Positions 16,701-61,146 of a stretch of DNA of 64,000 bases are shown piece after piece; the stretch's first letter is position 1; the number at the start of each line of letters is the position of its first letter. Under the pieces are notes generated by a model, which did not search any database, was not told the DNA's origin, and was given only the letters and a program-made list of their open reading frames with translations. The position numbers and the translations under genes were made by a program. Source of the stretch: Bugula neritina (Eukaryota > Animalia > Bryozoa); contig OZ037768.1 of the NCBI GenBank assembly GCA_964035545.1, positions 2,326,741 through 2,390,740 on the forward strand. The letters run 5' to 3'.

Positions 16701-19700
16701 TCATTTAGCTGGTAAAATCAGGTTATAGGGTGCAGTAGATAAATAATACAGCTTTGCTATAACAACAGCTTTATGTCACATAACATGGGGGTCACCTTAT
16801 CCCCCCTCCCCCAATACATCAGACGATCACAACTCATCGTGTGCTGCCGTGTTGTAGCCATAAAACTCATTCCTGCTGACCCAGTTGTTCTTATCTACGT
16901 CTTTTCCTGTAAAGTACTTAGCTTTGTAATTTTCTAGCATCTCCTCATTTTCTGCCAGATCTGCAAACTGCAGGAAAGCAAGAATATAATTTTATTCTAT
17001 TTATTATATAATATGTATAATATATAATATAATAACATTACCGCAGCTGTAAAATTAGCATATATCTATATATATGTATGTGTATAACCACGATATACAT
17101 CATGTTAAGTATATAAAATAGCCACCAAACCATCAATTTGCCAGGTAAGGAAAAACTAGCATAAAGATATTGCTCTTGCATGTTTTACTGTCTAAAATAC
17201 AAACTCCTTGTTTAACACAACACCCGCTCTACAAAGAACTGAAGTATGTATTGACTTAAATGTGTACCTCAGGATTTGATTTCAACCACTGCTCCACCTC
17301 TTCCATGCTGAGATACTTGTCACCATTAGCATCTATAACTTTGAATACGTCTTGCTTCTGCACGTCCACTAGTTCAACGTCCAGAGTTAATCTGGTGTGC
17401 TGGGGAATCCCCGCTGTAACAATAGATACATGTTGGAGCATTGGGTGTCGATAAGTTTAGGCTATATATTCAGATATATTCTGTGGTTCCAGCTGTATTA
17501 TTAACAGACTTCAGTTTTACTCACTGTATTTAGCAAAAGCTTATTGTAAAAACTTATATATTTTGCAATATAGTAAGAGAGATCAATGGTATCGTGAAGA
17601 TATCGTTTAGTCTTTCATAATTCATCATTAGACAGTTTTCTTTCTTGCATCACAAGATTTATTGTTTGACTTGTAGAGTATATTAGAGCACTTTTAGAAT
17701 CTTTCACAAAATACCAGGTTGTCAGAGGCCTTTTAAGGAGTATACTAAAAACCCCTTTGTGATAACACCCCCTCCCCATATACAAAGTTGTTGAGGTCAT
17801 CGTTTGAGCCCTTAACCAATGGCGTTAGTCACTAGAGAGGAAAAATTAATTCATTATACCCACAATGGCATTGTCCTTAAACTCTGTCATAGTTGACCTA
17901 GAAACGATTAGGCACACAACCTGCTATATATTTTCCAATCCAGCGATGACTCTCTAACCTAGAGATAGCTTAGGTTTATGCTAAAACCATCATTAATATT
18001 TTTCCAAGCCACCACCTTATCTGCAGTCATGCTACAGTTGGTCCTCACATGCTCCTAACTAGTCGCATAAATAAACTTTACAAGAGCTATAATCAGTGTC
18101 ACTACAAACAACACACTTTAGCTTTACCTCCATTGATGTCCGCAACAGCTAGTTCAGGGGGTATTCTTAACCGTCTCCTTTCACCAATGCACATTCCAAT
18201 GACCCCTTCAGTTAGTCCATACAGCACATCCTCTCCTCCAACATACACAGTGGTTTCATTGTCTCTAGTTGATTAAACACTTTGAATTACAATCAGCAGC
18301 CAGTAGGATAATAGAAAGTAGATCCAATTAAAATATAGACTGAGAACAACTAACTATACCATCCAATAAAAACAATGCCACTATATCTTACAAAAAACAA
18401 CAATTTAAAAACTTGAATTTTTATTTACTTGCAATAAAATAAAAATTAAATACCACAAAAATCAGAAAAACTGTTAATGGAGTATATAGTTGTCTTATAT
18501 AAAATAGCAAATGGACATATTTACCCGCTACTAAACTCTAGTTTAGACTCCGTGAAACCGTTATAAAGAATGGATATTGTGTCGTAAAAATACACAGCTT
18601 CTTCACTGCTACACTCTGGACCATCTACCTTGTACCAGCGAAGCTTGCCTCTCACTATTTCAACTAGCTCAGCCTCAAACACTATTGTTGTGTGTGGAGG
18701 GATTATATCTCCTAGCAAATAGTGTACAACATTCAGTGTTCAATGAGTGCAAAGATATGCCAAATATATGCACTTCCTATTGGTTAGCATTAATGATGAC
18801 ATCATCAGTTTTAGAGCTTTTTTGACAAAACTGTAAGTTTAGTTAAACTTTTAAAGTCAAAATATGGCTCAAAGGCCCTCCTTCATGGCAATACCCCCTA
18901 ACCCGACTCGTCCGATGAATGGACTATCTCCCAATAGACAGGACCCGCTACAAGTTAACAACATAATGGCACCATGGAGAGTGAACATGCCACCTAGTCT
19001 CCAGTCACCTTACCCTGTTCCACACTACATCAACGAAATCACAATGGGACTTCGGTCAGCCGTCCCCGCCCCATATGGAAACGGTTTTGGTGCTAGTGAG
19101 TTCTCTTACCATTTGAATAAAAACTATTCGTCCTGAACTGTTTTGTGATCTTTTATAAAGAAGTTTAATTGATGAGTAAAGATTGAGTACTAGAAGTCAT
19201 GGCCTGTATTTTAGGTTACCCGTCCCCTGTCTACCCTGTTGGATGTGGCATTAGCCCCGATGCCAATCTGTGGTTTCAGAGAAGACAAGAAGGCTGGCCG
19301 TGTAACTGGCCCCTAACACAAGTTGCCCCATCAAACTTAGGCTACCCTATAGAGCCAGGGTCTATGCCTCTACCGCAAGTGAGGGTAACTCCACAGATAC
19401 CACTTCCACCACAAAGGACTGGCTACACGTCGCTACCCCAGTTATTGGGACTGGACTAGAACATACATACATCAACTTAGAACTTAAATACATTGAGGGC
19501 CTTCTTCTTTAACAAAGTTCTATAGTAATTCTTAGGGTTTGGGGTTTGGGGTTTGGAGAGAAATATGCAGTGTATCACATTTATTGGCCTACTGAGAATT
19601 TTTATGGCTTGTGCATGATGATCATACTGAGTTATTCAACAAAATGAATTTAATTTTCTTCAATATAATACATCTATGCAAAACTGTGTTGCTTATTCTA

Positions 19701-22700
19701 GTTGGCCATTTTAGCCTACGAGTTGTATCTACAATAAAGAGCAGCAAAAAGTTTATTTACCATAGCCACCATCTCCATATGCCAATATGGGTGGTACTGT
19801 AAGTCGTCTCCTCTCCCCCTCACACATGTTCATTAGTCCCATGTCTACTCCTTTGATCACTTGTCTTTCTCCAAGAGTGAAGTCGTAAGTTTGATCACGG
19901 TCATAACTGGGAGAGGATAACATTTGTACTTTATGATATTTAGTTGGGTTTTACTACACGAAGTGGTAGTTTAGTTACATAATCAGAGGTCTTGTCTTAT
20001 TTGAAAGCAAAGAGCCTTCCCTCCACCCGCAATTGCTGTATGATGAGTATTCAAAACACAACTATATAACACTAGCTGAGCTTTTGCATTAAAGGACACC
20101 TTATACCTGCTCCCTTTGAGTTTAAACATAATAGCTACAAATTTTACACAAAAGTTATATCAGCTTTTGATGAAAAAACAGACTTTGTAAATAAAATGCT
20201 TAAAATCCTCAAAACAATCATTCCGTTACCTGCTGTCAAATGGTGATCCGTCTAAGAAGGTTCCGTTGTAATGTTCTCTAATAAAATCTCCAGCTGCAGA
20301 TCTTCTCGTACAGTTCTCAGGCATGTGCAGCAGTTCCATCTTATATCCAGAAGACTCGACATCTGCCAACTCCACCTCAAATATCAGAGTGGATCCTGGT
20401 GGGATGCTACCTATCGGTTAATAGTATTGGACAGTTTCATTTGATGCTATCCATCTTGCAAAGTTACATCTAATGCTACTGTCGGTTGATGCTATTGGCC
20501 GGTTATAGCTATCACATGTTACAAAGCAAAGCAGAAATATGTAGCTTATAATATACTTTAAAACCCAGCTAAAATAATATTATATAACAGACATTACCTA
20601 CTGCACTATCTCCATAGCCCAGCTCTGGTGGAATAGTGATTTTTCTTTTTTCTCCTTTGCACATTCCTTTCATGCCCATGTCCATTCCTCGAATCACTTC
20701 ACCCACTCCCAGGTGAAAGTTATAGGTGTCTCCTCTATCATAACTACAATTGTATATTCTACTTGTCAAGGAAAGGTTTTTATTCATAAATCAATTCATA
20801 ACCAAGGTTCAAAAACTCTTCAGTTTTTATCAAACTTTGCTTTTTATAAATGTTTGTACAACTATACTGTGTGCTTTTATAGCACCGGTATTGCAATACT
20901 ACACCTACATATGCATATAAAAATTGTAAACCATGTGCAAAAGTACTGGATGTAATTTGATAATGATAGAGTGTTAGAGGTTTAATACAGCTGTGCAGAG
21001 AGATGATATAGATTCAGATCTTACATCTAGTGTAGACTTAGCTACTATAATATTTTATGATGAGACCAGCAAGTAATTTTTTTACCTGGAATCAAATTTA
21101 GTCCCATCTTCTAAATAGCCTGTGTACTGTTGATACATGTAATCGCCCTCCCTTGCTCGATGTGTACAATCTGATGGTATAAAAATCTGATCTATTCGAA
21201 ACCCTGGTACAAAGCCATCCATGTCATCCGCCACTACAGCCATCACTTGCCATACTACCAACAGAGAGTAGATAACTCTCGAGTTCATTCTAAAATCATT
21301 CAGTATTTCATAATGTAAATATATTATTCAGTAAATTGTGCTTAGCTGAGAAATTTTTTGTATTTTTGGTAAATTCTGCTTGAATTTGAAGTTTTATTGC
21401 TATATATATTCTGCGGACAGCTTTACATACTTTAAGTATTTAAAGGAAAACCCATGACTGCTTAGTTTATTCAGATCAAAAGAACTTTTAGTTTAATGAG
21501 TTCGAACGAATTCGTACATTAATTATTAGTTAGATAGCATATTATTACATCTACATTACTGCATTGTTGCAATTTGTATGGTTTAATCTACCAAACACCC
21601 AAAAATACAACATGCAATTATAGATTTTAACGCTAAAACACAACTCCATTACCGTAACTAAACTTTTATTTCACATTATCCTTGCATCTCATAAAAGCAG
21701 TAGAGTGTAGAGCTAAGGAACTTATATTTAAACTTATACACAATCAAAACAAATTATGTGACTTTCAGGTTTATAAAAAGCTATCTAATGTATACACACC
21801 TTAGACAAGCAAGTAACCTTGCTGAGAGTGAGAGAATGAGTGAGCTAGTGAATATTGAAACTGACCGACTACAATGATCCGACTATTCAGTAAGCCTACG
21901 TGGCAGCAGAAGGCTGTTGAGATGACCTTGATACCTGTTTGTTGAGTCAGCACGTTAATTAGCACAGATAAACAATAGCAGCAGTAGCCATGTAATGGGA
22001 TACCCATTGGCTGTGCTATGCTATTAGGGCACCATGTATAAACGTTAACATGTGGGAGCAAAGTTCACTGAAATATGGCCTTTTTAAAATAACATTTCGG
22101 CAGCTACATTTTCAGACTAGGTTACAAATTCAGGAAATTGATGGTATTTCACATATTTAAGAGTAAGTTACAAACTAGGAAAGTTGACAATAAAACATTG
22201 TGCAGCAAAAGTTTAAAACTTTTACAGTACTATTGAGCTTTAAACAGCGAACAATTAATAGTACATATGTTGTCTACAAACTGGAAAATTATCTCGAGTT
22301 TCTGTGATAGCATTACTCAATATAGTCTTAATATACTTACTCTATAAGTCTACAGCTGCTTTTACACCAATTCTCCTGACTCTAACCTCTGGATATAGTA
22401 TGGCTGTGTACAACTAGATCCAAAGCTATAACTTGTGCCAAGAGTACTAGCTAGCTGTGTACAGACTATCTGAGCCAACACATCATGCATCTATCTTAGT
22501 AAAATGACATTCAAAAATAATGTTGATATGATATATGGCAATGCATTATGCATTGGGAGACTAACCCTATATTAGTGCATGCAGTAAAGTGTTGACAGAT
22601 TGATTGATGACAGCTTAAGCATGTTATGCTCTGTGCAGATATATTGCTATAGGAAGAAGTGTTCAAACAGTTGATACGACTAGTTGCTGGAATAAATGTA

Positions 22701-25950: not shown

Positions 25951-27409
25951 ATGATTTTTACCAGTTTTTGTATCAAACCTAACTGATATTTTTGATGACT
26001 CATGCCTGCTATAAATAGAGACTATTTTGCTACAGCTCTGTTGAAATCACAACTAGTTGCTGAATTGATAAGTTTAGATTTCGAATGTCACCTTTTAGAG
26101 GTCGAGTTATTACTGGAATCTTTCTGAGAACTGCCAGGACATTTGGTTGTGATTGGTTTATGATTGATACAATAGTTTTGATTGGTCAATTGTTAATATA
26201 GTCCTGGTAGACACTGGCAGGTAGTTTCAGTTTCAACATTAATTTAACCTGCAGTGTGCAAAAATTTCTCATTAACTTCAATAGCTTTACAAACCTGAAG
26301 AAAACTTTGAAAATAATGCTACCAAGGCTGGTGGCTGTTAGGCTGATGATGTTATATCTTAAAAGCTAGATTTTACAACTTTCTCAAAATAGTTAACTGC
26401 AAGTTACAAAACTTGTGACGATATTATGATTAAGTAGGCGTAGAGATGTATACATGCCTCAGACTATTTCAAAGTAATGTGGTAGAGACTTAGTTTCCCA
26501 TCAAAGAATATTTACAGGTATTCAATAAATGTGTTTTGCAGTGGTCCATATGCACACCCATCTATTCAAATATTATATCAAGACTTATTATACGAGATAT
26601 ACTTTTTTAGACTATAGAATGTTATATATTTTTATATTCTGCCTGAAGGTTTATTTACTAATAAAAAAATTTCTAATGCATAGATATTTATATAGCTCAA
26701 TATGCATTGTTAGTTTTTGCTGTACATACTATTTTGTTAAATATTTATTATAAAGAGTGGAATAGTTTGTGTATATTGTGCATTTTACTTACTTTTTCGA
26801 TAAATGATACTTGTAATACAACCGTGGTCACAATGTGTATTTTAAGCTGTGTTTGTGTGCAAGCTCTATAAATACCCATAAACGTTATAAATTCGAGCTC
26901 ATACCTAAACACTAAGATTATCAAATACCATGGGAGAGTATAACCATTTGCAGGATATGCAACCATATGCAAAAAACAAACTAATTTTTTATAAAATTAA
27001 CATTGCTATTAGCACCGAAAACTAAATCGCATTTGATGGCACGATCTGGCCTAAAGCGAGTTAAAACATAAATTTAAAATATAAATTACCTTAGTGGGTA
27101 TTAGCCCAGTTTATGCCGTATTAGCAGACAGAGGTGTGTTTGATGTCAGGTTTATGACATGAAGATTAGTTATTATACAAGTGTGTTATGTGGTAAGGTC
27201 AGCCAGTGTGTTTATGGTTAACATTCTGTCTCCCAGGGCATTAAAAAATTATATTTTTTTTATTTTGATAAAATTTCATGTAAAAGACATGTGAAAAACA
27301 ACTGTGTTATTTCAGCTGTAAATTATGTTTATGGTAAATATGGTTGGAGGTGTTTCATATTAGTTTTTGAAATAAACTAAAATATTTCAATTAGCAATAG
27401 AATATAACC

Positions 27410-27418
27410 ATGTGTGCA

Positions 27419-27517
<99 letters not shown>

Positions 27518-27588
27518 TTGTGTGTTTGTGTTTTTGTGTGTTTGTGTGTTTGTGTGTTTGTGTGTGCGTGTGTGTGTTTGTGTGTTTG

Positions 27589-27623
<35 letters not shown>

Positions 27624-27632
27624 GAGAGAGAG
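27410..27632. repeat. Compound (CGTG)n/(TG)n/(GA)n microsatellite
   Basis: Seen directly in the sequence. Confidence 0.95.
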
Positions 27633-28142
27633 AAAGTTGATTATAAAATGATACTAGTACTTCAACATTATATATACATGTTTTATTACTTTCACATATA
27701 TCCACATATTTATACATTATAGCAGGTTAATTTATTATAGACTTTGTGAAAATTCCCCAAATAAATAGTGTGTAAAGTTATACGCTTGTTGACATTGATT
27801 ATGTGTCAAAATGCTTGTACAAACAATAAAGTTGTAAGTAATTATGTTTGAACGTTGGCAAGTTGAAAAACTTTGTACAAAACATTAGATCTAAAAAGAA
27901 CTTTTTGCTTATACAAGGTAATTCAAACATTTGATTACTAATATCTATCAGTTTGCATAACCAATACTGTTTCTAAAAGTTGAAATGCATGCAAATGGCA
28001 AATTTGTTGAGGAATCATTTGTTTCCAAAGCAAATTTTAAAAAATGCAACAAAAATAGTAACTCTTTACTAAAAGCACACATTCGTTGATTCCTACAATA
28101 TTATGTTTGTGAGTTACTAACTAGGTGGTTAAATAGTAAAAA

Positions 28143-31100
28143 CTACAAACAAACACAGTGTGTTGCTGGGCAGTAAGGATTATCATAGTTGCAGTTGACT
28201 AAGCACCACTGGTCCATCAGGGGATAGTCATAGAAAGGTGCTTTTCCAGCGCAAACTTTTATCATTGGAACACCAGCAGATGGAGCTTGTGTAATTGGTG
28301 CTCTTGTGGTAGTTCTAACTGTAGTAGGTCTAAATGTAGTTGATGTGGTTGTTGGCATGTTTACTTCTGGCATTTGTATTTTTGGTTTGGTTGCTGGAGC
28401 CAAAGCTGGTGCCGGAGTATCTGGGGCTAGAGTAGCTGGGGCCAGAGTAGCTGGGGCCAGAGTGTCTGGGGCCAAAGTGGCTGGGGCCAAAGTAGCTGGG
28501 GCCAGAGTAGCTGGGGCCGGAGTTGCTGGTGCCATAGTAGCTGGGGCCAGAGTAGCTGGGGCTGGAGTATCTGGGGCCAGAGTAGCTGGTGCCGGAGTAT
28601 CTGGGGCCAGAGTAGCTGGGGCCAGAGTAGCTGGTGCCGGAGTATCTGGAGCCAGAGTAGCCGGGGCCAGAGTAGCCGGGGCCAGAGTAGTTGGGGCCAA
28701 AGTAGCTGGAGCTGGAGTAGCTGGAGCCGGAGTGGCTGGGGCCGGAGTAGCTGGTGCCGGAGTAGCTGGTGCCGGAGTAGCTGGTGCCCCAGTAACTGGG
28801 GCCGGAGTGGCTTGGGTTGGAGGAGCTGGGGCCGGAGTAGCCGGGGCCGGAGTAGCTGGTGCAACACCAAAGTTATTTGACAGCAGCCTGATATCTAAAG
28901 TGAGTCTTCTGTTGAGAGGGAAGCCAGCTGCAAGCACAAATGTGTAAACTTTTAATAGTTGGTAATGCATATTGGAATTTTAGAATGTTTTAGACAGAAC
29001 AATTGATTAAATTCTGAACACAAAACCCACTTATAGAACTGTTATTAACTAATGTGTCTCTATATCTTTAGTTTTAAATTTGCCTGTGGTCACAAAATAT
29101 TAGGAAAAAGTATAGAATTTTAGTTAATTTAATCTGAAAGGCTCGAACAGCCTTTGAAGAAGGCATCTAACAATTGCTCATTACCAATAGTTGGACAAAT
29201 TACTTTATCCTGGTGATTAGATAATGCAGGTGTACTGAGAAAATTATAAGCAAAACACATGCTAGAAAGCAGCTTTTATAATGCGAAAAACTTGATGAGG
29301 TTATTTATTAGGACATAATACTGTCATTTCGACTAAAAATTGTAAATGCGTAAGTACATCTCAATCTCTTAGATTATTAGGATACATTAGCCTAAGCTAG
29401 CAACTTAAAAAATAATGTCAAACTTAGTGTACTCACCATTGTCTATGTCAGCAGTGACAAACTCAGGAGGCATCAGCACTCTTCTTCCTTCTCCAATACA
29501 CATGCTATTAACTCCCCACGTAAGTCCCTTCGGCACTTTTTCACTCCCAACTTGGAACTTGAATCGTCCGCCCCTGTTATGAATAAAACCAAATAATCGT
29601 TTGACGCTATGCTCTACATCGCCTACGCAATTTGTTGAAACATTTTTGATGAGGTAGCGACTAAACTGTCAAAAAAGATAACCATTTTAAACATTTGAAG
29701 TTATATAACTCAATACGACATTAAAACGTGTTTGGCATAGCTATATATACTAAACTATTTTGAGCTCCTTATGAAAAAATATGCCCAACGGTACCTTTAA
29801 TGCATTTTACTTCGTAGATTTTAGTTCATATTTCATTCTGTTATAATAACAAAAACTACTCTTACTGAAGTCATGATTGCACTTACACATTGCTTCCTCT
29901 TTTGCCAGTAACCGATTCTCCAGAATATTCTATTTCCAGAATATCATTTCTAAAAACCTGTTTATCAGAGCCACAGGTTGGTCCATCAATCTTTACGTAC
30001 TGAAGTTTTCCACTCACTATCTCCACAAGCTCAGCATCAAACACCAGATCAGTGTTGGGTGGGATAGTTGTTCCTGCACGCCAGGAAAAGTATTTCAATA
30101 CAAGTATGGTTTTATTTGATGTAATGTTTCAGATTAGCTTTAAAAGAATAATCTTGTAACTAATTTAAAAGCAATTTAAAGCAAGTGAGCATGATTTTCA
30201 AGTATACGAGCAATTAACAATTGGTATTTTTACTTGAAATCATTACAACTTCAAAATTTACAAGAGACCAAAGGTTTTGCTGCTCCTAAAACTTACCACG
30301 GCCTTGGCGACCATATCCTAGCAAATGGTGAACTTTTATTTTTCTAACTTCTCCTTCACACATATCAAGAAGGTTCATGTCCAGACCCTGAATGGCGTTT
30401 CCTTCACCTACTGTGAAGTTTAACGTAGAATGCTCATATCTAGAAAGACAAGGAAATTATGCAGATCATGATGAATAACTGTTATTTCTATTGTACATAT
30501 ACAAGTTATTATCAACAGCTCATAAATTAAAAACTGACACCTTTAGAATTAACCATAAACAAAACTTTATATCTAAAGTATTTGATGATAAATAAAAACT
30601 ATTTAGTGTCAGAACTAAGCTAAATTTATAACCATATCAGACTTTCCATCTAAAGTTAAAGTTGAACAAAATATAAACTCCCTGAAAAAAGTGAATAATA
30701 GTTTAAATTAATTTACAATAAACACTAATGATTTAGAAGAGCTGTATAAACTAGCATAAAAAGTGAAAAATTAAGTAACATTATTAGTACTATATAGCCT
30801 CAATATATCTACTCATTAATTGTATAGCAAATATTTTCGGCTAAGTATGAAAATCTTACGTGCTCCAAAAAGGTGCGCCGTTGCTAAGGGAGCCATTATA
30901 ATGGAGCCTAATAGAATCGCCAGGGACAGTCTTTCTGATGCAATTAGCTGGTTTAGAGATAACTGTGTGTCCTGTGGGGCCATTCCAAGTATCGTTCAGT
31001 ATGACCTCAAATATTAGCTTTGAGTTTGGTGGTATTGAGCCTGGAATAGAGAAAGTTTCACTAATGCTGAAAGCCTGAAACTAACAACTCGTGACAAACT

Positions 31101-31853
31101 ACCAAATAGTTGCAGTTGAATGAGTAAGAGGAAACAGAAATTTGTTAGGCAATGGTGATTCAAGTTACTCACTGACTTGTCTGTTGCCATAACCGAGGGA
31201 TGGAGGAATTGTGATAACACGACGCTCTCCCTTACACATTCCTTTCATTCCCATGTCCATACCAGTAATGACAACACCGGTCCCAAGGTAGAAATTGTAA
31301 GTGCTGTTCCTTGAGTAACTGTAAAAAACCCAACAAATAAAAACATCACAATAAAACTAAATACATAAACGTGTTCATCAAAACATATTAAAATAAGTTA
31401 GGATGAAGCACATTTATACATGCTTTCTAAATATCTTGTAGTACTAAAATCGTGAAGCAACCTTCTATATAGCCCTGGCTATAGTAAGCAGAATGGGCTT
31501 TACATTCTGTAGTAAAACTAACAAGAGGCTGGCTTGCGAAAACAATGAGTATTATGTTTTAACCAAAGAGAACTACTTTGAGAAACTGACGCTTACCTGG
31601 AATCAAACATGGTTCCATCCACAAGTCTGCCGACATAGTGTTGATGCACGAAGTCTCCAGACTTGACTTTTGGTGTTCTACCATCCCAGCATGAGTTTGG
31701 CACCCAAGTCTGTTGAATTTTAAATCCCGGTCTATAGTTTTTAGTAAATTCAATAGGGTCAATGAGGTCCAAGTGTCTCCATTCAGCAAACTTACTTGAA
31801 GTGAGAGTAATTGCAGCTGCCAGCAGCAAACCAACCACACAGAGTCTACCCAT
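28143..31853 (-). CDS. Secreted FKBP paralogue (FKBP-B): signal peptide, 3 FKBP domains, Pro/Ala/Thr mucin-like stalk, C-terminal 6-Cys putative chitin-binding module; about 611 aa
   Basis: Exons 31597-31853, 31173-31318, 30860-31040, 30297-30439, 29887-30073, 29437-29573, 28143-28927. Internal exon sizes 146/181/143/187/137 mirror FKBP-A (146/181/146/187/137). The last exon runs LTLDIRLL into (PATxA)n and then CAGKAPFYDYPLMDQWCLVNCNYDNPYCPATHCVCL*. No HDEL. Confidence 0.88.
28389..28863 (-). repeat. Coding 15-bp minisatellite encoding (P-A-T-[L/P]-A)n
   Basis: Recurrent GCCAGAGTAGCTGGG / GCCGGAGTAGCTGGT units on +, about 30 pentapeptides. Confidence 0.9.
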
Positions 31854-34671
31854 TCTAGTTCTGAAATGCAAAATCAATTATAGAAAAATCTCAACAACAA
31901 AATTAGTAGGCTCAAAAGGCATAATTATAAGGAAATAATATTGAGAGTTGGTATTGAGATGTTCCAAATCCAGCAAGTTTTAGTCTCTAAATAAAATGAT
32001 ATATGATTTCTTATATGAACAAGAAAACAACAAATACAGAGAGCAAAACTGTTGAAGCTTAAAAGTCAATTATTTAGATGTCTTAATATTAGCAGCAAGT
32101 CAGCTAATGCTTGTCAAAATTGCAGGACAAAAAGGTAAAAGACTCCAATGATAGTGCATGTCACAGGACAATCCAGGTTAAAGAGCTAAGTATAGGTAAA
32201 ATATTACATAACAACTTTTACTAATTACTATCTTCTAGCCTCAACATACGAGTAGAATATGAATGTATCACATGCATACATTTATAATACCTATCTCTTT
32301 CTTCAGCAGTTATAACTTTTCTTCTCAAAATAAGTTTCAACTAATATATAGCGATATTTTGATCTCACTAATCGAGCAATCGCATAATCTTTTCAACAAC
32401 TTATGCCATACTGCTTTTGGTGCAGAATATTAAGCTGTAATATATATGACACTGATCGCATACCCTGTTAACGAACTGGATTCATTCACCTCAAACACAA
32501 CCCTTCAACTTAATCAGCTGGTACAGATAAGATCCAAGTCGCTTCAAGACAATAAATCGCAGATTAACCAGTCAATAATCCGGCCAGCCGGCTCTTTCTT
32601 AGCTCCTTGTTCTTCTACAATTTGCAATTTACACGATTATCTCTGCTTAGATTCTATTAATCTACAGATAACTTTCTGAGATAATTCTCAACTTTAAGAA
32701 ACCTTAAATCTTATTAGTTTTCTGTAACTGCCATATTTCCTTGGAACTATTGAGCTCAAATTGTTCAACAATATTTTTCTTACTTTGTCAATTGTACTTC
32801 TTTGCTATATAAAACAACTTCCGGTAAAAATATAATTTTCGAGAGTTAATCACTATACCAAACACAAAATTTAAATTTAGCAAAAATCTTCTGTACTGAT
32901 TTTAATTAAGATACAATTTAACTATGGTTACTTAAAGAAATGTTCCCACTTCAATCTCTACACTAAACACAGTTCTATGAGCATTTTTCTGCTTACCTTT
33001 CTGGTAACCTGTCACAGGCCGTCACTGTAGCTAAGTGATCCAGAACCTCTTCACATCATACACTTATACTCCTTTCTGCATGCGTACATCTATCAGAGCA
33101 TGATGCAGCTATGGTGTGACGCAGAGATTAATAAATCCTTCTTCATTTTAACCTTGTTGTAATGATGAATGGTCTTCCCTATCAATCAAAGCCGTGTGAG
33201 CCAATCTGTCCTCATGATTCTTGCCTTGAAGAATGTAAGACGTAAACAGAACAATCATAAAAAAGGGTAAAGTTTAAAAAAGGGTTAAGAGTATTTCTTT
33301 CCTGTGAACAGGATTTTGATTGTTTACTGAATTGAAACCAAATTATGGTTCTACAAAGAAACAGTATTAATAGCCTCCATGTTTGAATTTTTTCAAACTG
33401 CTCATGGTAACACTACTTTGACATATTTAGATGTCGAGTTCTATAAATCAAATCTAAAAAGTCTAGTTTGTGAAATATTGGTTATGTTTTATGTGTTCGG
33501 TTGTCATATTTTTTCAGCTAAACTGTCAATTTGAATATGCTGGTCAATATATCAAACTAGATGAAATAAACCAGTATACATTATAAAGCTGAACTGCCTA
33601 TGTGTCAAAAAGATGGCACACGCAAGCCTCATGCACCAATTAACAAAAAATGCTTATGAAATTAGGAAAGGCATAATCAGCTGCAGGTAGAAATAAAAGC
33701 TGAATCATGGTTGGTTGTGGGCAGTCGATGTGGAAATGCCTATCACGACTATAAATAGTGCTAAGTCGAGCCATATCGTACCAACCGATAGCAGCCGGGT
33801 ATAGTTTTAAGGAAACAAGTCGATGAATAAATTATATTATTGTGAAGTGTGGATTAACATTGGATATAAAGCATTTGAAAACCGCAAAAAATGATTATTG
33901 GATAATTCCTTTAATAAATCACAGGTCCTAACTACAAAAGTCTAGAAATAAGCTTAAACAACTTAACAAAAATGACAGATAAGCCTTTTAGCTAATTACA
34001 ACTGAAGACATTGCTGCTGCTTAAGTGAGACAAAGCAGAATTTATATCTTATTCAAAAATTAGGAAATTTAAATTCAACATGATGACAGAAAGTTGGCAA
34101 AAGAAATATACATGCATTATAACCTAATATTATAATGTAATGTATTATAAAATTAATTATCATAATATAATCAAAATGCGGATAGGATGCGCCTATATAC
34201 CTGATTTTATATTAGAGAGTAGAATAATAAATTGTGTATGCTCTGCAAGTAATTGAAGACATGTGTTTCAGCACCCAACCTAGTCCAAGAAATTAAACTC
34301 CTTATAACTATGTTAATAGTCATGTGCTCAATCTCATCAGTTCTGACTTTGCAGTGTGTTTAATATTGTACTCGTGGGCCATGAAAATGATAGAGAATAT
34401 CAACACAAAGTACCTTCTGTAGCTACCAACATGCGGCTCTTTATTTGATGTCAGAAAGTGCAAGACCTCCCTCTTTTCTTTAAATAGAATCTCTCTTTCT
34501 ACATGCATATCGTGTGATCTACAACTAACATGATGATTTGCAACTACAGATTAACTGTACACATTATAAACTTGTTCAAGTAATATAATTTGATATGCAT
34601 TAAATATAGCCATTCTACAATCTAGGTAAAAGCTTATTGATATTATTTACCAACTGTTAGACCAGCACTAT

Positions 34672-34901
<230 letters not shown>

Positions 34902-37900
34902 GAAATATAAAATTCATATGGAAATAATTAACTCTTACAGATTAAATTAACTAGTGAATTTTTACCCATTTAATAATTTAAAGCTAAATAGAGGAGTTAA
35001 AAGCTTAATCTTTTATCTTCAAATAATTTATACTAAAAGACTATTATACCACTTATACCATTCAATATTCAGTACTCAGCCCTGTGGGTGTACCAAGAAG
35101 TGATTAAGCTGAAAATGTTAATTATTTTTTAGTTCAACTTCATTTCTTGTCTACTTCAAATTAAACTGGTGCATTCAACATTTTGGCTCGACACATACAT
35201 TAGTAACATAAGAGCTTTCATTTTACACACTTGCCTGAGCACAACTGAAAGCTAGCAAATGGAGGTCTGTTGATGAGTTAGCATTGAACTACAGGAGAAG
35301 TGCAACTGTTGACCAGGTTTTTTGATCTGCCTGTTTGATGTTGAGCTAATCAAGCTTCATTAGTTTTTAATTTTAGATGAAGATATTTTGACAAAGACTC
35401 ATGAGTGATGGCCTTAGATTTTATGCAATATGGTTATGGCTGTGCATTATGAGCATACATCTATTTAAATAGCAACTAGAATATATTATGAATTTATGCA
35501 AACGCTTAACTCTTGGATGTTAATATGACTTACTCAAAAGATAACTGCAATTACTGAAAAAAGACAAAAATCCTATAATTCACTTTCTTATCCATTATGT
35601 TTCAGACCTTAAATTTAGTGCTTCTCTTGCTTAAATTAAGATAGAGGCCCAACCCAGGTTTTGCTAAATATCAGTCAGTTTATATTGAATTTTATATAAT
35701 ATGGGATTCAGCTAGCTTGTATATTATTTTATTAAACTGACTTGATTTTTGATCTAAAGCCAAAAATGCATATTTCGACAACCAAATGCAAATTATAGGC
35801 ATAATTAATAGCACCATTAGCATATGATTTATAATTCATTCGCCTATCTTTGATTTTTCATTTGAAAACAGGCAACACTTGACATTGCAAGTTGCATAAC
35901 TCTGTTAAATAGCGCAACTAGACACAGAAAGGAACTCTGCTGATGTAAATGTAGAGTGAGAAAAGAGGCACTAGAGCTTTAGTGACAGATAGCTCGTGTC
36001 AGTCGTGGCATGTCTCGGGTTGTGAGTTGGCATCTTGAGAAGGTGCCCTAAAGCAACCCACTTGTTAAACTCCAAGACATAAATTCAATTTAGAAGATAA
36101 AGCCATGCCAAGTGCTGAAGTGGCATATAGTAAAAGCCTTGGCACACGGTGTGTCTCTGAAACACCAGCTACAAAACACATTAAAATATCTCAATAGGAA
36201 TTCTATGAAACTTCAGTTATACTCTAGGAGAAGCAAATGCGTTTGCTAATTGCTTTACTGCCCAGGTTATAAAAAAATTTTTTTTTTTTAAAATCTTGCT
36301 TACTATTCTTGATAACACACAATTGACTAGAGTAAGCACTAGAAACTAAGTTGATATATAGGAATTAGCCAATTAGATCACAGCAAGAACTTTTGTAGTT
36401 GGCAGTAGCGTTACAGTAGCACACTAAAGAAGAATGGAACACGACGATTTCTGAGATCAACCAATGAGATATATAGATATGCTGTTTAAAAACTTCTGAA
36501 CCCACTACGAATCAAAATGCAGACTTCTAACTTGCAAGCTAGCATTCTAGCCATTACAGTATAAGGGCTACAAAAATCTCAGCGCTATAATGCTATTTAA
36601 AATGGATACCTTACTAGAATACTTGCATTTGTTGCATAGAAGGTTCTTGCCTATATGTTTACGTGGTATTTGCTATTTTTATGCTGCGTGTATATATTAT
36701 TCTGAAAATGGTGTAGAATAGGGCAAATCATTTGTTTGCAACTCTTATTTTGCTCACATGTCTTAATTAGCTGTAAAAAAAATTTCAGCTCTTATTTTCA
36801 ATGATAACCTCAATTTCAGAATTTTTAGAATTAAAGTCTAGTGAACCATTATTCAGTAGGAACCCTGGGATAATTTCGGTTCTGTATGATGTCAGGGTTT
36901 TAGAAAAAGTTCTTTACTAAAGCTATTAAAACTAACAGCATATTTCAGTTGCATAGCAAGACGATTCAGTTTTAAACAGTGCCAGCTATCCTAACATTGA
37001 AGTTAGTAAATCCAGTGATACCTGAGTTCTTTGAAGCACGGAAAGTTGCTAACTTATCATAGAGACCCAATCTTATCCTGCAGAATGCAGATATTAATCA
37101 TCTAGGATTAGGATTTAAAGCATTATTCTCATATCAAATGAGGTTAGAGAACATCTTAACTTAATTGAAAGATGGCATTAAGTCAGACGTAGCTTATAAG
37201 ACATGCTATATCATCCTTGTGTTCTCCTTCCATTGTGATATGATAATCTTGAAAGCTTTGCTTTTTGATGAATATCATTATGAATTATGCATTTCATACG
37301 TTTAAAAATGCAAAGAAATAACATGCAATCATTTAAGGATAAAATTAGATTGACCAATAGACGATTTGGAAATAATTAGGAAACCTGGAATATATACAAT
37401 AGTTAGCTGTTAATTATAAAATTAAAGTGTCTACCCAAATGCATGAATATATTATTAGTGGTAATTATAGAATAACATATGGCATTGAAAAACCTTATAG
37501 TTCATGAATTTCCTCTTTGTGCTCCAAGATACAAATCAAAGTGTTTGGCTTACATGAGTATATGATAGAGTGTTTCTACCAGTACCACCTTGTGGGTGTC
37601 TCCAACTTCCACTACACACCCTCCCAACATTGTCCAGCCCAACAAACACACAGAATACGCACTAATAGGGTGAGCCTCTCTACCATCGCTCATCCCTTTT
37701 TGAATATTGGTTGGATAATTCGTCCTTTTAATTTCATGTCATATAGTAATAATAGAGGTTAAACGATTTTCTATGCTAATTTGAATAACAATCATATACA
37801 GCCTAAGCATAAATTTAGAAAAATAGGTGGCGAAAAGTTATTGCTATTTAAGGGTAACTGAAAGCTCTTGCTTTCACCTTTATATAACAGCACACAGTGT

Positions 37901-43462: not shown

Positions 43463-46400
43463 ATGAAGTTCATGTTGACAGCTCTTGCAGTTATATTCTG
43501 TACGTACTTTCGGTTGGCTAATGTAAGTTATTCTTATCTTTAGTTTTTCACAAACTCTAAGTTTCTTCGATATAGACAGTGTGGTTATATGGTATTATAT
43601 AGTTAATACCAACTTGCACAAGAATTCTAATTCTTTTTATTGTTAAAATTTTAGCATATTAATGTCCTAGTATCTTTCTTTCTTATATATAGTAATATTA
43701 TATTATATTGTATATATTATATCATGTTATATTATGTGTACTATATATTACATTGTATTATGTATATCATGTTATACCATTATATGTGTTCTGCTATAAT
43801 TAGATATGGGCTGCTTTCAAAATATGGTATAATATAATACGTATAATATATTATATTATACCATATTTTGAAAGCAACCCACATCTAATTATAGCAGAAC
43901 ACATAGTATGATATATCCGCATTATTCTAGAATCTAGTAGAAAATGATAATAAAGATGTTATATAACCAGTATACATGTAGATCTAATTTGCTTTGTTCC
44001 GTTATATCAAGTTTACTTCACTACTTTACTTTAAGGTTCTGTTATTTCAGGGACATGGTTACATGCTGGATCCACCAGGCAGATCAACTGCATGGAGAAA
44101 GAACTTTACCACTCCTGTAAATTATAATGATGATAGTATCCATTGTGAAGAGCATGATGTAAGTGTATATCTTGATTTTCTTTAATGAGTCTCTTTGTAG
44201 AAATTATATATTTAATTAATATTGTATTACAAATATTATAAAATATGTTAAGTTAAATAAAGTGAAAGTTGGTTTATAAACGAACATGCAATCTTCTTTG
44301 AATGCCTGCCTTCTACGTGATTGCTTTATCATTAGAAAGAAAAAGTGAAACCTCAAAATATTTGAAATAGTTTAGGAAGATTCCCATGTTATTTCTTAGT
44401 ACCTCAAAAATTGTTTGAAGCAGATATAAAATCCGAGTGAAGTTACTGAGTCATCTATTGGATACGTGGACAGTTACCTAGAGAGAGAACATTTTCAGCT
44501 ATTTATACTACAATTGAAAATAATGTGACCAGATCCATAATTTAAATTTGTATAGTAGTTATAGCTGTGTACAATCTCAACTTTAAAGTGTCAACAGAAT
44601 ATTTCAAACGAATCCAGTTTTTGATCGATTGGTGATGCTAGCAGCACACAATGATTGTCTATTTGAAGCTGTTAAATGAGTTGGCACATCTGATACTTAT
44701 CTAAAAACTGTTTTCTAATTACAAATTGACTTTGTAAATAATATAGGAACAGCACAACACCAATGGCGAAAAATGTGGTGTATGTGGAGACGACTATTCA
44801 TCAACCAACAAACAACAAGAACCTGGTCCTGGTAATCGTTATGCTACAGGAACTATTGTTGCTACTTACAATGCAGGACAATACAGTGAGTACTGGTGGT
44901 CTATTTCCTGTTACAGTGTACGCTTGTCATTTTCAGAAATTATCAGCAAAACAGATCTGTAGAATTCAAAGTCATTCTGCATCAAGTAATATATTTGACT
45001 GCAATCTCAAAACAAATCTATTTCTACTAAATTAAACTTCCATAGTTTTTAATTGATTTTAGTAACCATAAAGAGCATGCTGACAGCCTACCACAAAGGA
45101 TACTTTGAGATTAAGTTGTGTCAAAATAATATTCCTCAGAGAGGATATGATGCTTCAGTGGCTGTAACACAGTCTTGCTTTGACCTAAACCTGTTGAAAG
45201 CATCAAATGGAGCTACCAGATATTCATATTCACCAATTCTTATCCGAAGCAGCAAGTATAATGAACAAAATAAGCCCTTGGGAGATTGCTCTCAAACTAT
45301 AAAACATTATATATAATTAGATTCTAATTAACAAAAAACTTGTCTGTTATGACAAGTTTAGATGGGTTTTAGAATTACAGCCAAGCCAGGCACAAACATA
45401 TTCACTGTGAAGTTACCTGAAGGTATTACATGTGAGGCTTGTGTATTGCAATGGAAATACCGTGCAGGTGAGTTTGATAAAATCATTTGTCACATCCCAC
45501 ACCTAAACTCATTAGTTAGTAGTGATTTGTAGTACATAAGAGTAGAAATTTTACAAAATGGAACATTCTGCTGGGATGAAGGTAAATTTCTGCAGCATTG
45601 TCTGAGATACAACTGCTCTTCACATTTATATAAAAAATATATCTTTGAAAAATAATGTACCATGTAGGCAGACAGAGTTCACTTTTGAGTTTGGCTTTGT
45701 GTTGAATAATTGTATTTTGAGTGCTGGTTAATATGTCATGTGATTAAAGGTAACAGCTGGGGTCAAGAGTATGTAGATGGTGAACTGGTTAGTGGATTAG
45801 GCTATGGATCACAGGAAGAATTTATCAGCTGTGCTGATGTGAAGATAGTCTCTTCTGGTGAGTTATCCTCTCTTTGAATTTTACTACAAATTCATAGTAT
45901 TGGATTGTGTTGTATTGTATTGTGTTGTGTTGTGTTGTGCTGTGCTGTGCTGTGTTGTGTTGTATTGTGTTGTGTTGTGTTGTGTTGTGTTGTGTTGTGT
46001 TGTATTGTATTGTATTGTATTGTATTGTATGCCATCAATAGAATGGCTGCTAATGTCTCATAGAATTGATCAGTACTTGAGTACAAATCATTCTGAATAC
46101 AAAGGATATAAGCAATAATATGTTTTATGCAGGTGTTGATGTATCCAACAAATCACAATCTAATACCGTGGCACTTAAAAAACTTTGGATACCAACTATT
46201 AGAAAATCCAAACTTTCTACTATTTTCTCCACCGCTTCAAAGAAAACTCTTTGCTATGGGAAAAGGTCTGAATTCGATGCGTTGTGTACCGAGATTTGTG
46301 CCATGAAAAACTGTGACAATTATAACTGCTGGTGTGATGACAATCCTGTGCTGCCAACCAAGAAAGTCTGTGAAGGTGCCTTTAAAGAATGGTGTGAGAT

Positions 46401-46479
46401 TAAGTGCAATCATATTTCTTTTTATTGCCCATTTTCTTATTGCTCTTGTCAACACGTTCAATTTGACCCTCGGGTTTAA
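43463..46479 (+). CDS. AA15-type lytic polysaccharide monooxygenase (LPMO-A) with two C-terminal 6-Cys modules; possibly pseudogenising
   Basis: Exons 43463-43522, 44051-44158, 44747-44885, 45063-45219, 45373-45467, 45750-45857, 46133-46479. Signal peptide followed by G|HGYMLDPPGRSTAWR, KCGVCGD, LTAYHKGYFE, CVLQWKY, GNSWG and QEEFISCAD. The exon 4 donor is AT instead of GT. Confidence 0.8.
43783..43905. repeat. Long inverted repeat (57-bp arms, 9-nt loop) in LPMO-A intron 1
   Basis: 43783-43839 pairs with 43849-43905 with 2 mismatches. Confidence 0.9.
45905..46030. repeat. (TTGTG/TTGTA)n pentanucleotide microsatellite in LPMO-A intron 6
   Basis: Seen directly; a short remnant is present in the equivalent LPMO-B intron (about 48712-48740). 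Confidence 0.9.
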
Positions 46480-48273: not shown

Positions 48274-51200
48274 TCAAACTCGAGGGTCAAACTGAACATC
48301 TTGACATGTACAGTGAGAAGCTGGGCAGTATGAAGGAATGTGATTACAGTTGTTTTCACACCAGACTTTGTGGACACCTTCACAGACCTTCTTGGTAGGC
48401 AGCACAGGATTGTCCTCACACCAACAGTAGTTAGGGTTACAGTTCCCCATGGCACAGTTGTTGGTACACCAAGCATTGAATTCAGACTTTTTATCATAGC
48501 AGCGAGTTTTCTTGGCAGTTGTGGAGAGAATAGCAGAAAGTGTGGATTTCCCAGTAGTTTGGATCTTATCTGTTGTAGGTTTTAGAGTAGTAGATTGATT
48601 CAAGTTGGTTACAGCACCATCTACATTAAACATTACAATTGGTTTACATTCAGAATGATTTGTGCTCAATTGATGAGTAATTCTATGAAACACAAGCAAC
48701 CACACTTATAACGACATACAATACAACAACACAACATAATATAAATCAGCAGTACCAGTAATTTGTAGTAGAGTTTGTAATAAAATTCAAGGAGAGGATA
48801 ACTCACCAGAAGAAACTATCTTCACATCAGCACAGTTAATAAATTCTTCCTGTGATCCATAGCCTAATCCACTAACCAGTTCACCATCTACATACTCTTG
48901 ACCCCAGTTGTTACCTTTAATCATATGATGATGATTTGATTATTAGAATACAGTTAAAAAACAAACACTTTCTGTTAACATAGTATTTTAAGCTTCATGT
49001 ATAGAAATTGAATTTATATTCAAAAATGAATTTAGCAAAATAAACTGGTTATTCAAGTTTTAAGTTCTAGAATCAACTCATCATTGCAGTAAGGGATTAT
49101 TCCTTCCAAAATGGTAATCAATAAATTGCCATAAAAGTTCTCCCTCCCCAGTCGCTACCAACTGATAGTTTTATAGGCAACAAATTTAGAAAGTGAAGCA
49201 TGGTTATATCCAACTCACCTGCCCGATATCTCCACTGCAATACACAAGCCTCACACGTGACTCCTTCAGGTAACTTCACAGTAAATATGTTTGTACCTGA
49301 CATAGCTGTAATTCTAAAATCCACACTGAATTGTCACAACTCTAGTCAATATATTATGTGAATGTTGTAATGTTTAGAATCTGATCATGTAAAGTTGTGT
49401 AATAAACTATACCATTTCATACAAATTTATATAATACATTTACATATAATATACACAAATTTAATGATGTTCATATTTGCTGCTGTAGATAACAGTTGGT
49501 GAATTTAATTACCTGGTAGCTCCATTTGATGCTTTCAACAGGTTTACGTCAAAGCAAGACTGTGTTACAGCCACTGAAGCATCATACCCTCTCTGAGGAA
49601 TATTATTCTGACACAACTTAATCTCAAAGTATCCTTTGTGGTAGGCTGTCAGCATGCTCTTTATGGTTACTAAAGTCAATTAAAAACTATGGAAATTTAA
49701 TTTAGTAGAAATAGATCTGTATTGAGATTGCAGTCAAATATATATTATACAGTATACTTAAATTACTTGATGCAGAATGACTTTGAATTCTAATGCAGAT
49801 CTATTTTGCTGATAATTTCTAAAAATGGCAAGCGTACACTGTAACAGGAAATAGACCACCAGTACTCACTGTATTGTCCGGCATTGTAAGTAGCAACAAT
49901 AGTTCCTGTAGCATACCGATTACCAGGGCCAGGTTCTTGTTGTTTGTTGGTTGATGAATAGTCGTCTCCACATACACCACACTTTCCACCATTCACGTTG
50001 TGCTGTTTCTGTAGGACATAAATTTTATAATTGTTTCAACACTTCAGCCTAGCTATCAATTGTTAGCTGGTATAATAAACAGAGCATTTCTTTATCAAAC
50101 AAATGAAATACTACAGCTTCTGCTACAGGGTTTATATATCACAGATCTAGCAATATAATATATCAGTTTCACAAAACTGTTAAACTTTAAAGATAGTATT
50201 GTAACCACATGCATAGGGGCATCAGGATAACTGCCCTGCCAATGGGCCAATGTACGTGAGGGTACTAATAAGCAAATACCACAACATATAACTAACCCTT
50301 ACTTATATATTGTATATATAATATAACTAGAATATCTGAATGCAGTTTGTTGTTAGCTGTTGACTCATAGAGCAACCAAAAATATATGTGTTAATGATGA
50401 TCAAATTACATCTGATAAAACTGAGTTATCACTGTTATAAAATAACGCTAATGAAAGGAAGTGCTAGTTATAAGACCAGTCAAGTGATCCTCTCACCACT
50501 GTGTGATATCATATGATAGCGAATTTGGGGGGGGGAAAAAACTTATGAAGTTAACATGAAAAAGTATCATTTATTTTGTTTATCAAATTATCACAGAACA
50601 TTGTTATCATTTTTAGATGAAAAGCAAGTCTTAGAAAACAGTTGTCTGACAGGGATAGCTTTTATAAATAAAGCTAATAAAAATGTATGCATGTTGAAAT
50701 TTTCTGTAGCTAAATAGGAATATCTATAAATAAGAAGTAATTGTAACAGCATTAGCTACTTGGCAAATGAATATCTAAAACTCTGAAGCGTTTAAAGTTG
50801 CAGAGAATAAATAATGCTTTTCATGTGGTTTACAGTTACTAAATAGAATATACGCCTCTCTTTACAAGGCAGCAAACTATTTCTTGCCAAGTCATCTGCT
50901 AACAGCAACCGAAATACAGAACTTATGCGGCTTTTACCAAAACCTATCAACTTCAAGTTGCGGTTTTGAATTACTAAACAATTGATGAAGGTCTTAATAA
51001 ACCTACTCATGTATTTAAATGTTTAACATTGAGAGTTAACAGCTATTCCTAAAAACTGGCTAGGCTGTTTAGAAACTTCTTATTTACTTTATCAAGGCAG
51101 AAAGTAATTTTGTTTAATAATATGCTTACATTATATCCTCCACAGTTGAGACCATTGTCATCATAGTTGGCAGGAGTACTGAAGCCTGCTCTCCATGCAG

Positions 51201-54466: not shown

Positions 54467-61146
<6,680 letters not shown>

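Follow-up and report, generated by a model that had tools for sequence, protein, structure and literature searches.

In the bryozoan Bugula neritina, a transcribed chimeric gene joins three FKBP domains to a mucin-like stalk and a six-cysteine module

The 64,000-nucleotide stretch analyzed here (the window) corresponds to positions 2,326,741 to 2,390,740 of contig OZ037768.1, forward strand, in assembly GCA_964035545.1 of Bugula neritina. Its DNA is AT-rich and eukaryotic, and its reverse strand holds two related genes of the FKBP family, FKBP-A and FKBP-B. FKBP-B, the subject of this analysis, was rebuilt base by base as seven coding exons between 31853 and 28143 (1836 nt, i.e., 611 codons plus a stop), with introns that are all of the GT..AG type. 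In order, it encodes a putative signal peptide, three FKBP domains, a Pro/Ala/Thr linker of ~209 amino acids (aa), and a C-terminal six-cysteine (6-Cys) module. This bears out an earlier, sequence-only reading of the locus, which had claimed a Pro/Ala/Thr stalk of ~200 aa followed by a Cys tail; exon 7 holds 30.4 repeats and 6 Cys. The parts of the gene are as follows.

31597..31853, minus strand: exon 1, which carries the ATG, the apparent signal peptide MGRLCVVGLLLAAAITLTSS at the N terminus, and the N-terminal half of FKBP domain 1 (Pfam FKBP_C match at residues 62-85; junction with exon 2 in RNA)
31173..31318, minus strand: exon 2, core of FKBP domain 1 with the canonical VVITGMD...LGYG (Pfam FKBP_C, E 3.3e-15; PDB FKBPs, E 2e-18; 73% identity to FKBP-A exon 2)
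30860..31040, minus strand: exon 3, end of domain 1, interdomain linker, and start of domain 2, with PFWS for PFDS (junctions 31173/31040 and 30860/30439 in RNA)
30297..30439, minus strand: exon 4, core of FKBP domain 2, with NAIQGLD and VHHLLGYG (Pfam FKBP_C, E 4.5e-10; FKBP-A/B domain alignment)
29887..30073, minus strand: exon 5, which completes domain 2 and begins domain 3 (junctions in RNA)
29437..29573, minus strand: exon 6, degenerate core of FKBP domain 3 (Pfam FKBP_C, E 5.1e-07; FKBP-A/B domain alignment)
28143..28927, minus strand: exon 7 in full, a single open frame
28881..28927, minus strand: start of exon 7, encoding the final strand of FKBP domain 3, AGFPLNRRLTLDIRLL (acceptor position and phase as in FKBP-A exon 7)
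28404..28859, minus strand: mucin-like stalk, made of a 15-nt unit repeated 30.4 times and translated as PAT(P/L)A or PDTPA (Tandem Repeats Finder, 83% matches, no indels)
28254..28403, minus strand: proximal linker rich in Thr, Pro, and Arg (..TTTSTTFRPTTVRTTTRAPITQAPS..), which aligns with the PTTRAP/PTTQAP linker of L006, the third lytic polysaccharide monooxygenase (LPMO) gene of the genome
28146..28253, minus strand: C-terminal 6-Cys module, C-x15-C-x3-C-x6-C-x4-C-x-C plus a final Leu (profile match; AlphaFold2 model; RNA contig over 28208-28333)
28143-28145, minus strand: stop codon, in the frame of exon 7

All three FKBP cores match Pfam FKBP_C (PF00254), with N-terminal domain halves in exons 1 and 3, and the PDB matches of exon 2 include FKBP2 and FKBP14 of the endoplasmic reticulum (ER). 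The change of architecture falls within exon 7, which opens with GFPLNRRLTLDIRLL, the last FKBP strand, and continues in one frame through the 15-nt repeats, a T-rich stretch, and the Cys module to C-x14-WC-x3-C-x6-C-x4-C-x-C-L-stop (letters KVCAGKAPFYDYPLMDQWCLVNCNYDNPYCPATHCVCL-stop, last residues HCVCL). The stalk qualifies as mucin-like (PTS), being a long Pro/Thr-rich tandem repeat of 30.4 x 5 aa. Pfam assigns no family to the tail or to the module alone and finds the His-brace LPMO_10/chitin-binding type-4 domain in no exon of FKBP-B, which has only the tail, and not the catalytic domain, in common with the neighboring LPMOs of family AA15. Searches for protein homologues of exon 7 residues 186-260 (candidates of 143-455 aa) and of the last 65 aa (candidates of 36-114 aa) returned none, and a feature search of the ESM Atlas with exon 7 gave no usable match.

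Because the repeat is prone to misassembly and the tail resembles the tails of LPMOs, the FKBP exons and the repeat-plus-module exon might belong to different genes brought together by the assembly or the gene model. Window positions 27900-32000 were compared with RNA contigs from four runs, each of a different study and one on record as an oligo-dT RNA library. They skip the predicted introns exactly at 31597/31318, 31173/31040, 30860/30439, 30297/30073, and 29887/29573. The joint between exons 6 and 7 (29437/28927), which the sequence-only reading had proposed, is present in contigs of runs X8 and X14, and contigs ending at 28928 in runs X1 and X2 run on into the letters of exon 6 as loose ends. 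That reading had also named an outcome that would speak against it, the splicing of exon 6 to an EF-hand/HDEL exon; no such transcript, and no joint of exon 6 other than 29437/28927, occurs among the contigs of the four runs. At this joint the contigs read GAT AAC, versus GAC AAT in the genome, two synonymous changes that mark them as coming from another allele or lineage and, thus, as independent of this assembly. Further, the last FKBP strand and the tail lie in one open exon. Nothing was found in favor of an artefact, which these independent junctions rule out and to which we assign a negligible probability: FKBP-B is a real, spliced, transcribed chimeric gene.

The module (28208-28333) and the 3' end are both represented in X8. 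An X8 allele lacks 42 nt (14 codons) at 28393-28438, the end of the Pro/Ala/Thr repeat, and this in-frame difference indicates that the length of the stalk varies between alleles. The RNA contigs over 27900-32000 all diverge from the genome by ~3-10%, with many synonymous sites, and the public RNA runs and the assembly seem to represent different haplotypes or cryptic lineages of B. neritina. Divergence of this order fits the known cryptic lineages of the species.

The second FKBP gene of the window shows what the tail of FKBP-B stands in place of.

16830..21288, minus strand: FKBP-A, the paralogue of the parent type, in which a signal peptide and three FKBP domains are followed by two EF-hand exons and HDEL (exon comparison; Pfam)

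FKBP-A lies ~7 kb from FKBP-B on the same strand and has the layout of the vertebrate proteins FKBP9, FKBP10/FKBP65, and FKBP14, which are ER-resident multidomain FKBPs with EF-hands and H/KDEL. The sequence-only reading took FKBP-B to be its duplicate with near-identical exon sizes. Kinship stands: the phases are identical and the exon sizes correspond (203/146/181/146/187/137 nt in FKBP-A versus 257/146/181/143/187/137 nt in FKBP-B). The two are not close copies, however, as exon 1 differs by 54 nt and exon identity is only 43-73%, highest in exon 2 (73%), so that a recent duplication is rejected and the duplication must be old. The divergence point, placed inside exon 7 after the third FKBP domain, was confirmed: FKBP-A proceeds from LTLDVELV into an EF-hand (Pfam, E 1e-5) and, in its last exon, a second EF-hand loop and HDEL, whereas FKBP-B proceeds into the stalk and module. 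The claimed loss of both EF-hands and HDEL likewise held, in that Pfam detects no EF-hand in exon 7 of FKBP-B, its C terminus (HCVCL) is not H/KDEL, and tblastn with FKBP-A exons 7 and 8 recovers no EF-hand or HDEL relic near or downstream of FKBP-B. Beyond these two genes the subfamily has no member in the genome, where a single, more distant FKBP match lies on another contig. Judging from signal peptide, tandem FKBP domains, and matching phases and sizes, FKBP-B shares descent with the ER-type multi-FKBP family. It resembles the FKBP9/10/14 type in combining a signal peptide with tandem FKBP_C domains, and FKBP-A in its exon phases and sizes, with ER FKBP2 and FKBP14 among its best PDB matches; it departs from the ER FKBP/EF-hand family in having a 200-aa Pro/Ala/Thr stalk and a 6-Cys module instead of the EF-hand pair and HDEL.

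The ligand pockets were read by eye from alignments of the six domain halves of FKBP-A and FKBP-B, on what we take to be FKBP12 numbering (Tyr26, Phe36, Asp37, Val55, Ile56, Trp59, Tyr82, and Phe99). Domain 1 of FKBP-B keeps HY..FDS, VVI.G.D, and LGYG, and presumably retains every one of these positions except Trp59, which is Met. Domain 2 has FWS and VHH (versus FDS and VPP in FKBP-A), which on the same assumed numbering corresponds to Asp37 -> Trp, Val55 -> Ala, and Trp59 -> Leu. Domain 3 is degenerate in both paralogues and, as in FKBP-A, appears to be without most of these positions. Met or Leu at the presumed equivalent of Trp59 is a feature shared with ER FKBPs, whereas the apparent absence of the Asp37 equivalent from domain 2 sets FKBP-B apart from the ER FKBP/EF-hand family. 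Of the three domains, domain 1 alone looks catalytically competent.

The apparent loss of pocket residues from domains 2 and 3 invites a reading in which FKBP-B is a structural glycoprotein, exported and built into the organic matrix of the cuticle or skeleton, with FKBP domains that serve as a catalytically silent scaffold for proline-rich partners. The long mucin-like stalk fits such a role, as do the many secreted matrix-type proteins on which the module family occurs (see below), and FKBP domains recur in bivalve shell proteomes and transcriptomes, where their role is unknown (PMC8382897). Domain 1 argues otherwise: its pocket pattern appears canonical, and no other part is as well conserved between the paralogues (73%, exon 2), which suggests that it has retained its usual ligand or substrate binding. 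We regard a purely structural role as unlikely, if well short of negligible.

Five copies of the module exist in the genome outside FKBP-B, all within AA15 LPMO genes, and two of these genes are in the window.

46237..46452, plus strand: terminal pair of tandem 6-Cys modules in AA15 LPMO-A (profile; the upstream exon matches Thermobia AA15 [5MSZ], E 1e-4)
48304..48519, minus strand: terminal pair of tandem 6-Cys modules in AA15 LPMO-B (profile; 87% identity over 124 aa [BLASTP] to KAF6024662.1)
G000:C4:17194443-17197556, open reading frame 844-1626, plus strand: L006, the third of the AA15 LPMO genes, at ~17.19 Mb of the same chromosome-scale contig

The 216-Mb assembly holds only these 5 copies in three AA15 LPMO genes and 1 in FKBP-B, and the six Cys are invariant across the five copies of the window (four in the two LPMOs and one in FKBP-B), the number that the sequence-only reading had counted. 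To place the module more widely, a profile of the six Bugula copies was run against 1.84 billion representative proteins (E <= 0.001), yielding 193 module-bearing representatives, of which the best 150 supplied the figures that follow. They contain 316 copies, the last copy ending no more than 6 residues from the C terminus in 82 of the 150 proteins. The commonest spacing is C-x15-C-x3-C-x4/6-C-x4-C-x-C; that of FKBP-B (15,3,6,4,1, with WC and CP) is the second commonest and agrees with the family pattern C-x(10-15)-C-x3-C-x(4-9)-C-x4-C-x-C, which has Trp before C2 and Pro after C4. Pfam partners are LPMO_10 in 17 proteins, GH18 in 4, and CBM_1 in 2, together with single cases of CHRD, LDLa, M35 peptidase, PAN, and others. 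Named members come from the molluscs Littorina, Nucella, Batillaria, Pomacea, Sinanodonta, Biomphalaria, Haliotis, Potamilus, and Solemya, the annelid Paralvinella, Plasmodiophora, a foraminifer, and Bugula neritina itself, and the module is also present on AA15 proteins of molluscs, annelids, and cnidarians.

The match of FKBP-B to this family is not circular, since a profile built from 90 non-Bugula copies and run against 1006 six-frame pieces of the window recovers the FKBP-B tail at 40 bits (E 1.3e-11); its only other matches in the window are the two LPMO tails, and the FKBP-B module outscores both. This upholds the claim that FKBP-B and the local LPMOs share a module. An AlphaFold2 model (from a 96-row alignment) predicts a strand-helix-strand knot with a pLDDT (predicted local distance difference test) of 91. 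The model has no match in PDB by Foldseek or among 48,161 chains by VIA-align, but a domain of 39 residues scores low Z values in any case, and the result is, thus, no proof of a new fold. By shape, it matches models of cnidarian LPMO and GH18 clusters in the ESM Atlas.

A motif of this description is already in the literature. Insect group I AA15 LPMOs end in two 6-Cys repeats, C-X15-C-X3-C-X6-9-C-X4-C-X1-C, according to Qu et al., who describe the motif of LPMO15-1 as unrelated to CBM14 and report no function for it (PMC9156745). The spacing of FKBP-B fits this published formula exactly, and its module likewise stands at the C terminus behind a linker (the comparison being with the published pattern only); in insects, however, two repeats follow an LPMO domain, whereas in FKBP-B one repeat follows FKBP domains. 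Sabbadin et al. defined X473 as a six-Cys, C-terminal, putatively chitin-binding domain of <40 residues on oomycete AA15, GH18, and GH19 proteins (PMC8393829), and a later review still lists it as uncharacterized (PMC10154629). Compared by description, the module family of FKBP-B resembles X473 of Aphanomyces astaci AA15 LPMOs and GH18/GH19 chitinases in its length of <40 residues, its six Cys, its C-terminal position, and its attachment to chitin-active enzymes (PMC8393829, PMC10154629), and our profile also matches GH18+CBM1 proteins. The authors of X473 reported it only from the Saprolegniales, unlike the module here. Probably the two belong together. Contrary to the impression that the module is exotic, it is a widespread eukaryotic family that has no Pfam entry, with a spacing published for insects and probably represented in oomycetes too. 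It extends well beyond animals and can form arrays (representatives P0001, P0016, and P0054): a 1459-aa metagenomic protein has ~20 copies, and the module is also present on a foraminiferan (Bolivina) protein and on a Plasmodiophora VWFD protein, with matches to haptophyte proteins in the Atlas search.

The tail of FKBP-B has its closest relative within the genome in L006, whose last exon combines the final part of the catalytic domain with a long run of PTTQAP/PTTRAP repeats and one 6-Cys module. The C-terminal 85 residues of FKBP-B (linker plus module) match the tail of L006 over their whole length (42% identity, E 5e-18), whereas with the adjacent LPMO-B only the module part aligns. Probably, then, linker and module came as one piece from a single-module AA15 gene, and the adjacent LPMO genes are unsupported as the source, given the better and longer alignment with L006. 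Outside the window, the module profile matches B. neritina KAF6024662.1 best. Both it and KAF6018174.1 (154 aa, "hypothetical") consist only of AA15 tails, with a catalytic end, a linker, and two modules, and they correspond to window positions 46120-46479 (plus strand) and 48274-48705 (minus strand); the public B. neritina models of these LPMO genes look truncated.

FKBP-B lies <20 kb from two of the genome's three module-bearing LPMO genes, a proximity that is unlikely to be due to chance. In a genome of 216 Mb it would fit shared regulation, and it lends some weight to a role within the cell, in which FKBP-B escorts its clients as a chaperone, the 6-Cys module binding nascent chitin-associated clients or the products of chitin synthase, and leaves the cell only as a by-product. 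The parent family, the FKBP9/10/14 type, acts in the ER on secreted matrix proteins. FKBP-B, however, has neither HDEL/KDEL nor EF-hands nor a membrane span, and a 200-aa stalk of the O-glycosylation type is typical of extracellular or surface proteins, such that we consider an escort role improbable.

Between the genome and RNA alleles, the differences listed span 30 codons, 16 synonymous and 14 nonsynonymous. The FKBP exons account for 15 synonymous and 9 nonsynonymous codons, the latter clustering in the signal peptide and interdomain linker; the T-rich linker has 5 nonsynonymous and 0 synonymous, and the module 1 synonymous. The pattern in the T-rich linker, the decay of domain 2, and the failure of every protein search made to return an orthologue would all suit a lineage-specific chimera that is transcribed and serves no selected function. 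Against this stand a 611-codon frame that is intact despite a divergence from its paralogue to 43-73% identity, which makes the gene old; a module that keeps its six Cys, Trp, and Pro and scores above the local LPMO modules against the outside family; FKBP-exon changes that are mostly synonymous, with an indel that is in frame; and spliced contigs in four studies. That FKBP-B is such a by-product strikes us as very improbable.

We give an even chance to the view that FKBP-B is a functional chimera, derived from a duplicate of the FKBP-A type, that acts as an exported isomerase or holdase docked to the chitinous wall. On this proposal, an old tandem duplicate of an ER gene for three FKBP domains, EF-hands, and HDEL would have lost its Ca-binding and ER-retention end and gained, within the same exon, the P/T-rich linker and 6-Cys module. 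The signal peptide would direct the product into the secretory pathway, and export would follow, since HDEL, a membrane span, and a tail of the glycosylphosphatidylinositol type are all lacking. The Pro/Ala/Thr repeat of ~200 aa, if O-glycosylated, would form a stiff stalk; the module would dock the protein to the body wall's chitinous matrix, which the LPMOs target as well; and domain 1 could isomerize or hold proline-rich matrix proteins at the wall, with domains 2 and 3 as noncatalytic binding or spacer domains. Export, O-glycosylation, chitin docking, and an extracellular peptidyl-prolyl isomerase or chaperone action are all inferred from sequence. The architecture suggests a folding helper that is exported and anchored to a chitinous wall, and an extracellular role as a chitin-tethered isomerase is plausible; the fuller claim, that a stalk-held prolyl isomerase or chaperone on the chitin wall catalyzes the folding or assembly of proline-rich matrix proteins of the cuticle or skeleton, we put forward tentatively.

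Several points weigh against this proposal. (i) For no member of the 6-Cys family has binding to chitin or any other ligand been demonstrated (PMC9156745, PMC8393829, PMC10154629), and the CHRD, LDLa, M35, and PAN partners may indicate a general matrix- or protein-binding module. (ii) The Asp37 equivalent (replaced in FWS) and the IPP motif appear to be missing from domain 2, domain 3 is degenerate, and catalysis by FKBP-B may be weak or irrelevant. (iii) The RNA contigs show neither one full-length molecule nor a level of expression, and the allelic tally given above is partial, with 52 further variants outside it, and only indicative. (iv) The protein-level searches were made exon by exon, and the sequence comparison covered this genome and representative proteins.

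The sequence-only reading did not recognize the architecture, and nothing found since has contradicted it: FKBP_C is absent from the best 150 of the 193 module-bearing proteins, and the literature on FKBPs of Bugula, of shell matrices, or with carbohydrate-binding modules describes no fusion of FKBP with a 6-Cys module. The domain search by profile hidden Markov model that it proposed thus agreed with it as to the fusion but met a module family that was already known. By comparison with this genome and with representative proteins, the FKBP plus 6-Cys architecture is new and built from known parts. To our knowledge, all known animal multidomain FKBPs of the secretory pathway are ER residents that aid proteins of the collagen/elastin type before export. 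FKBP isomerases outside the cytoplasm do occur in microbes, as Legionella Mip and Trypanosoma cruzi MIP, which act on extracellular matrix proteins, a site of action that is proposed for FKBP-B; they are single-domain virulence factors, targeted by way of a dimerizing helix, and carry neither a mucin stalk nor a Cys module.

If the proposal is true, an FKBP has been addressed to an extracellular chitin matrix, prolyl isomerization, catalyzed or chaperoned, can contribute to the assembly of the cuticle or skeleton outside the cell, and the 6-Cys X module has its first functional handle, as a portable address tag for chitin matrices. The transfer of module and linker together onto an unrelated catalytic domain argues for an autonomous targeting unit, and FKBP-B is, in this respect, a natural experiment on the AA15 6-Cys module, which in insects, molluscs, annelids, cnidarians, and protists has no assigned function. 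Short and confidently folded in the model, the module is amenable to binding assays. Should FKBP-B turn out to be ER bound or inert, it would still be a clean, RNA-supported case of domain replacement within an exon.

Two minor features of the locus complete its description, the first of which is an exon upstream of the coding region.

32490..32633, minus strand: 5' noncoding exon of FKBP-B (at least 138 nt in RNA contigs; 3' end near 32490 inferred from the donor GT)

This exon lies ~630 nt upstream of the ATG exon and reads ...GTTGTGTTTGAG up to its boundary with GTGAAT. RNA contigs of runs X2, X8, and X14 pass 31866 into an exact match to 32496-32525; the likely donor is GAG/GTGAAT at 32490/32489, with the CAG that precedes 31860 as acceptor. 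The second concerns the window at large, in which long microsatellites of the types (ACGC/AC)n, (GA)n, and (CA)n occupy 27391-27722 (just downstream of FKBP-B), 34657-34917, and 56211-56628 and yield spurious long open reading frames in all frames.

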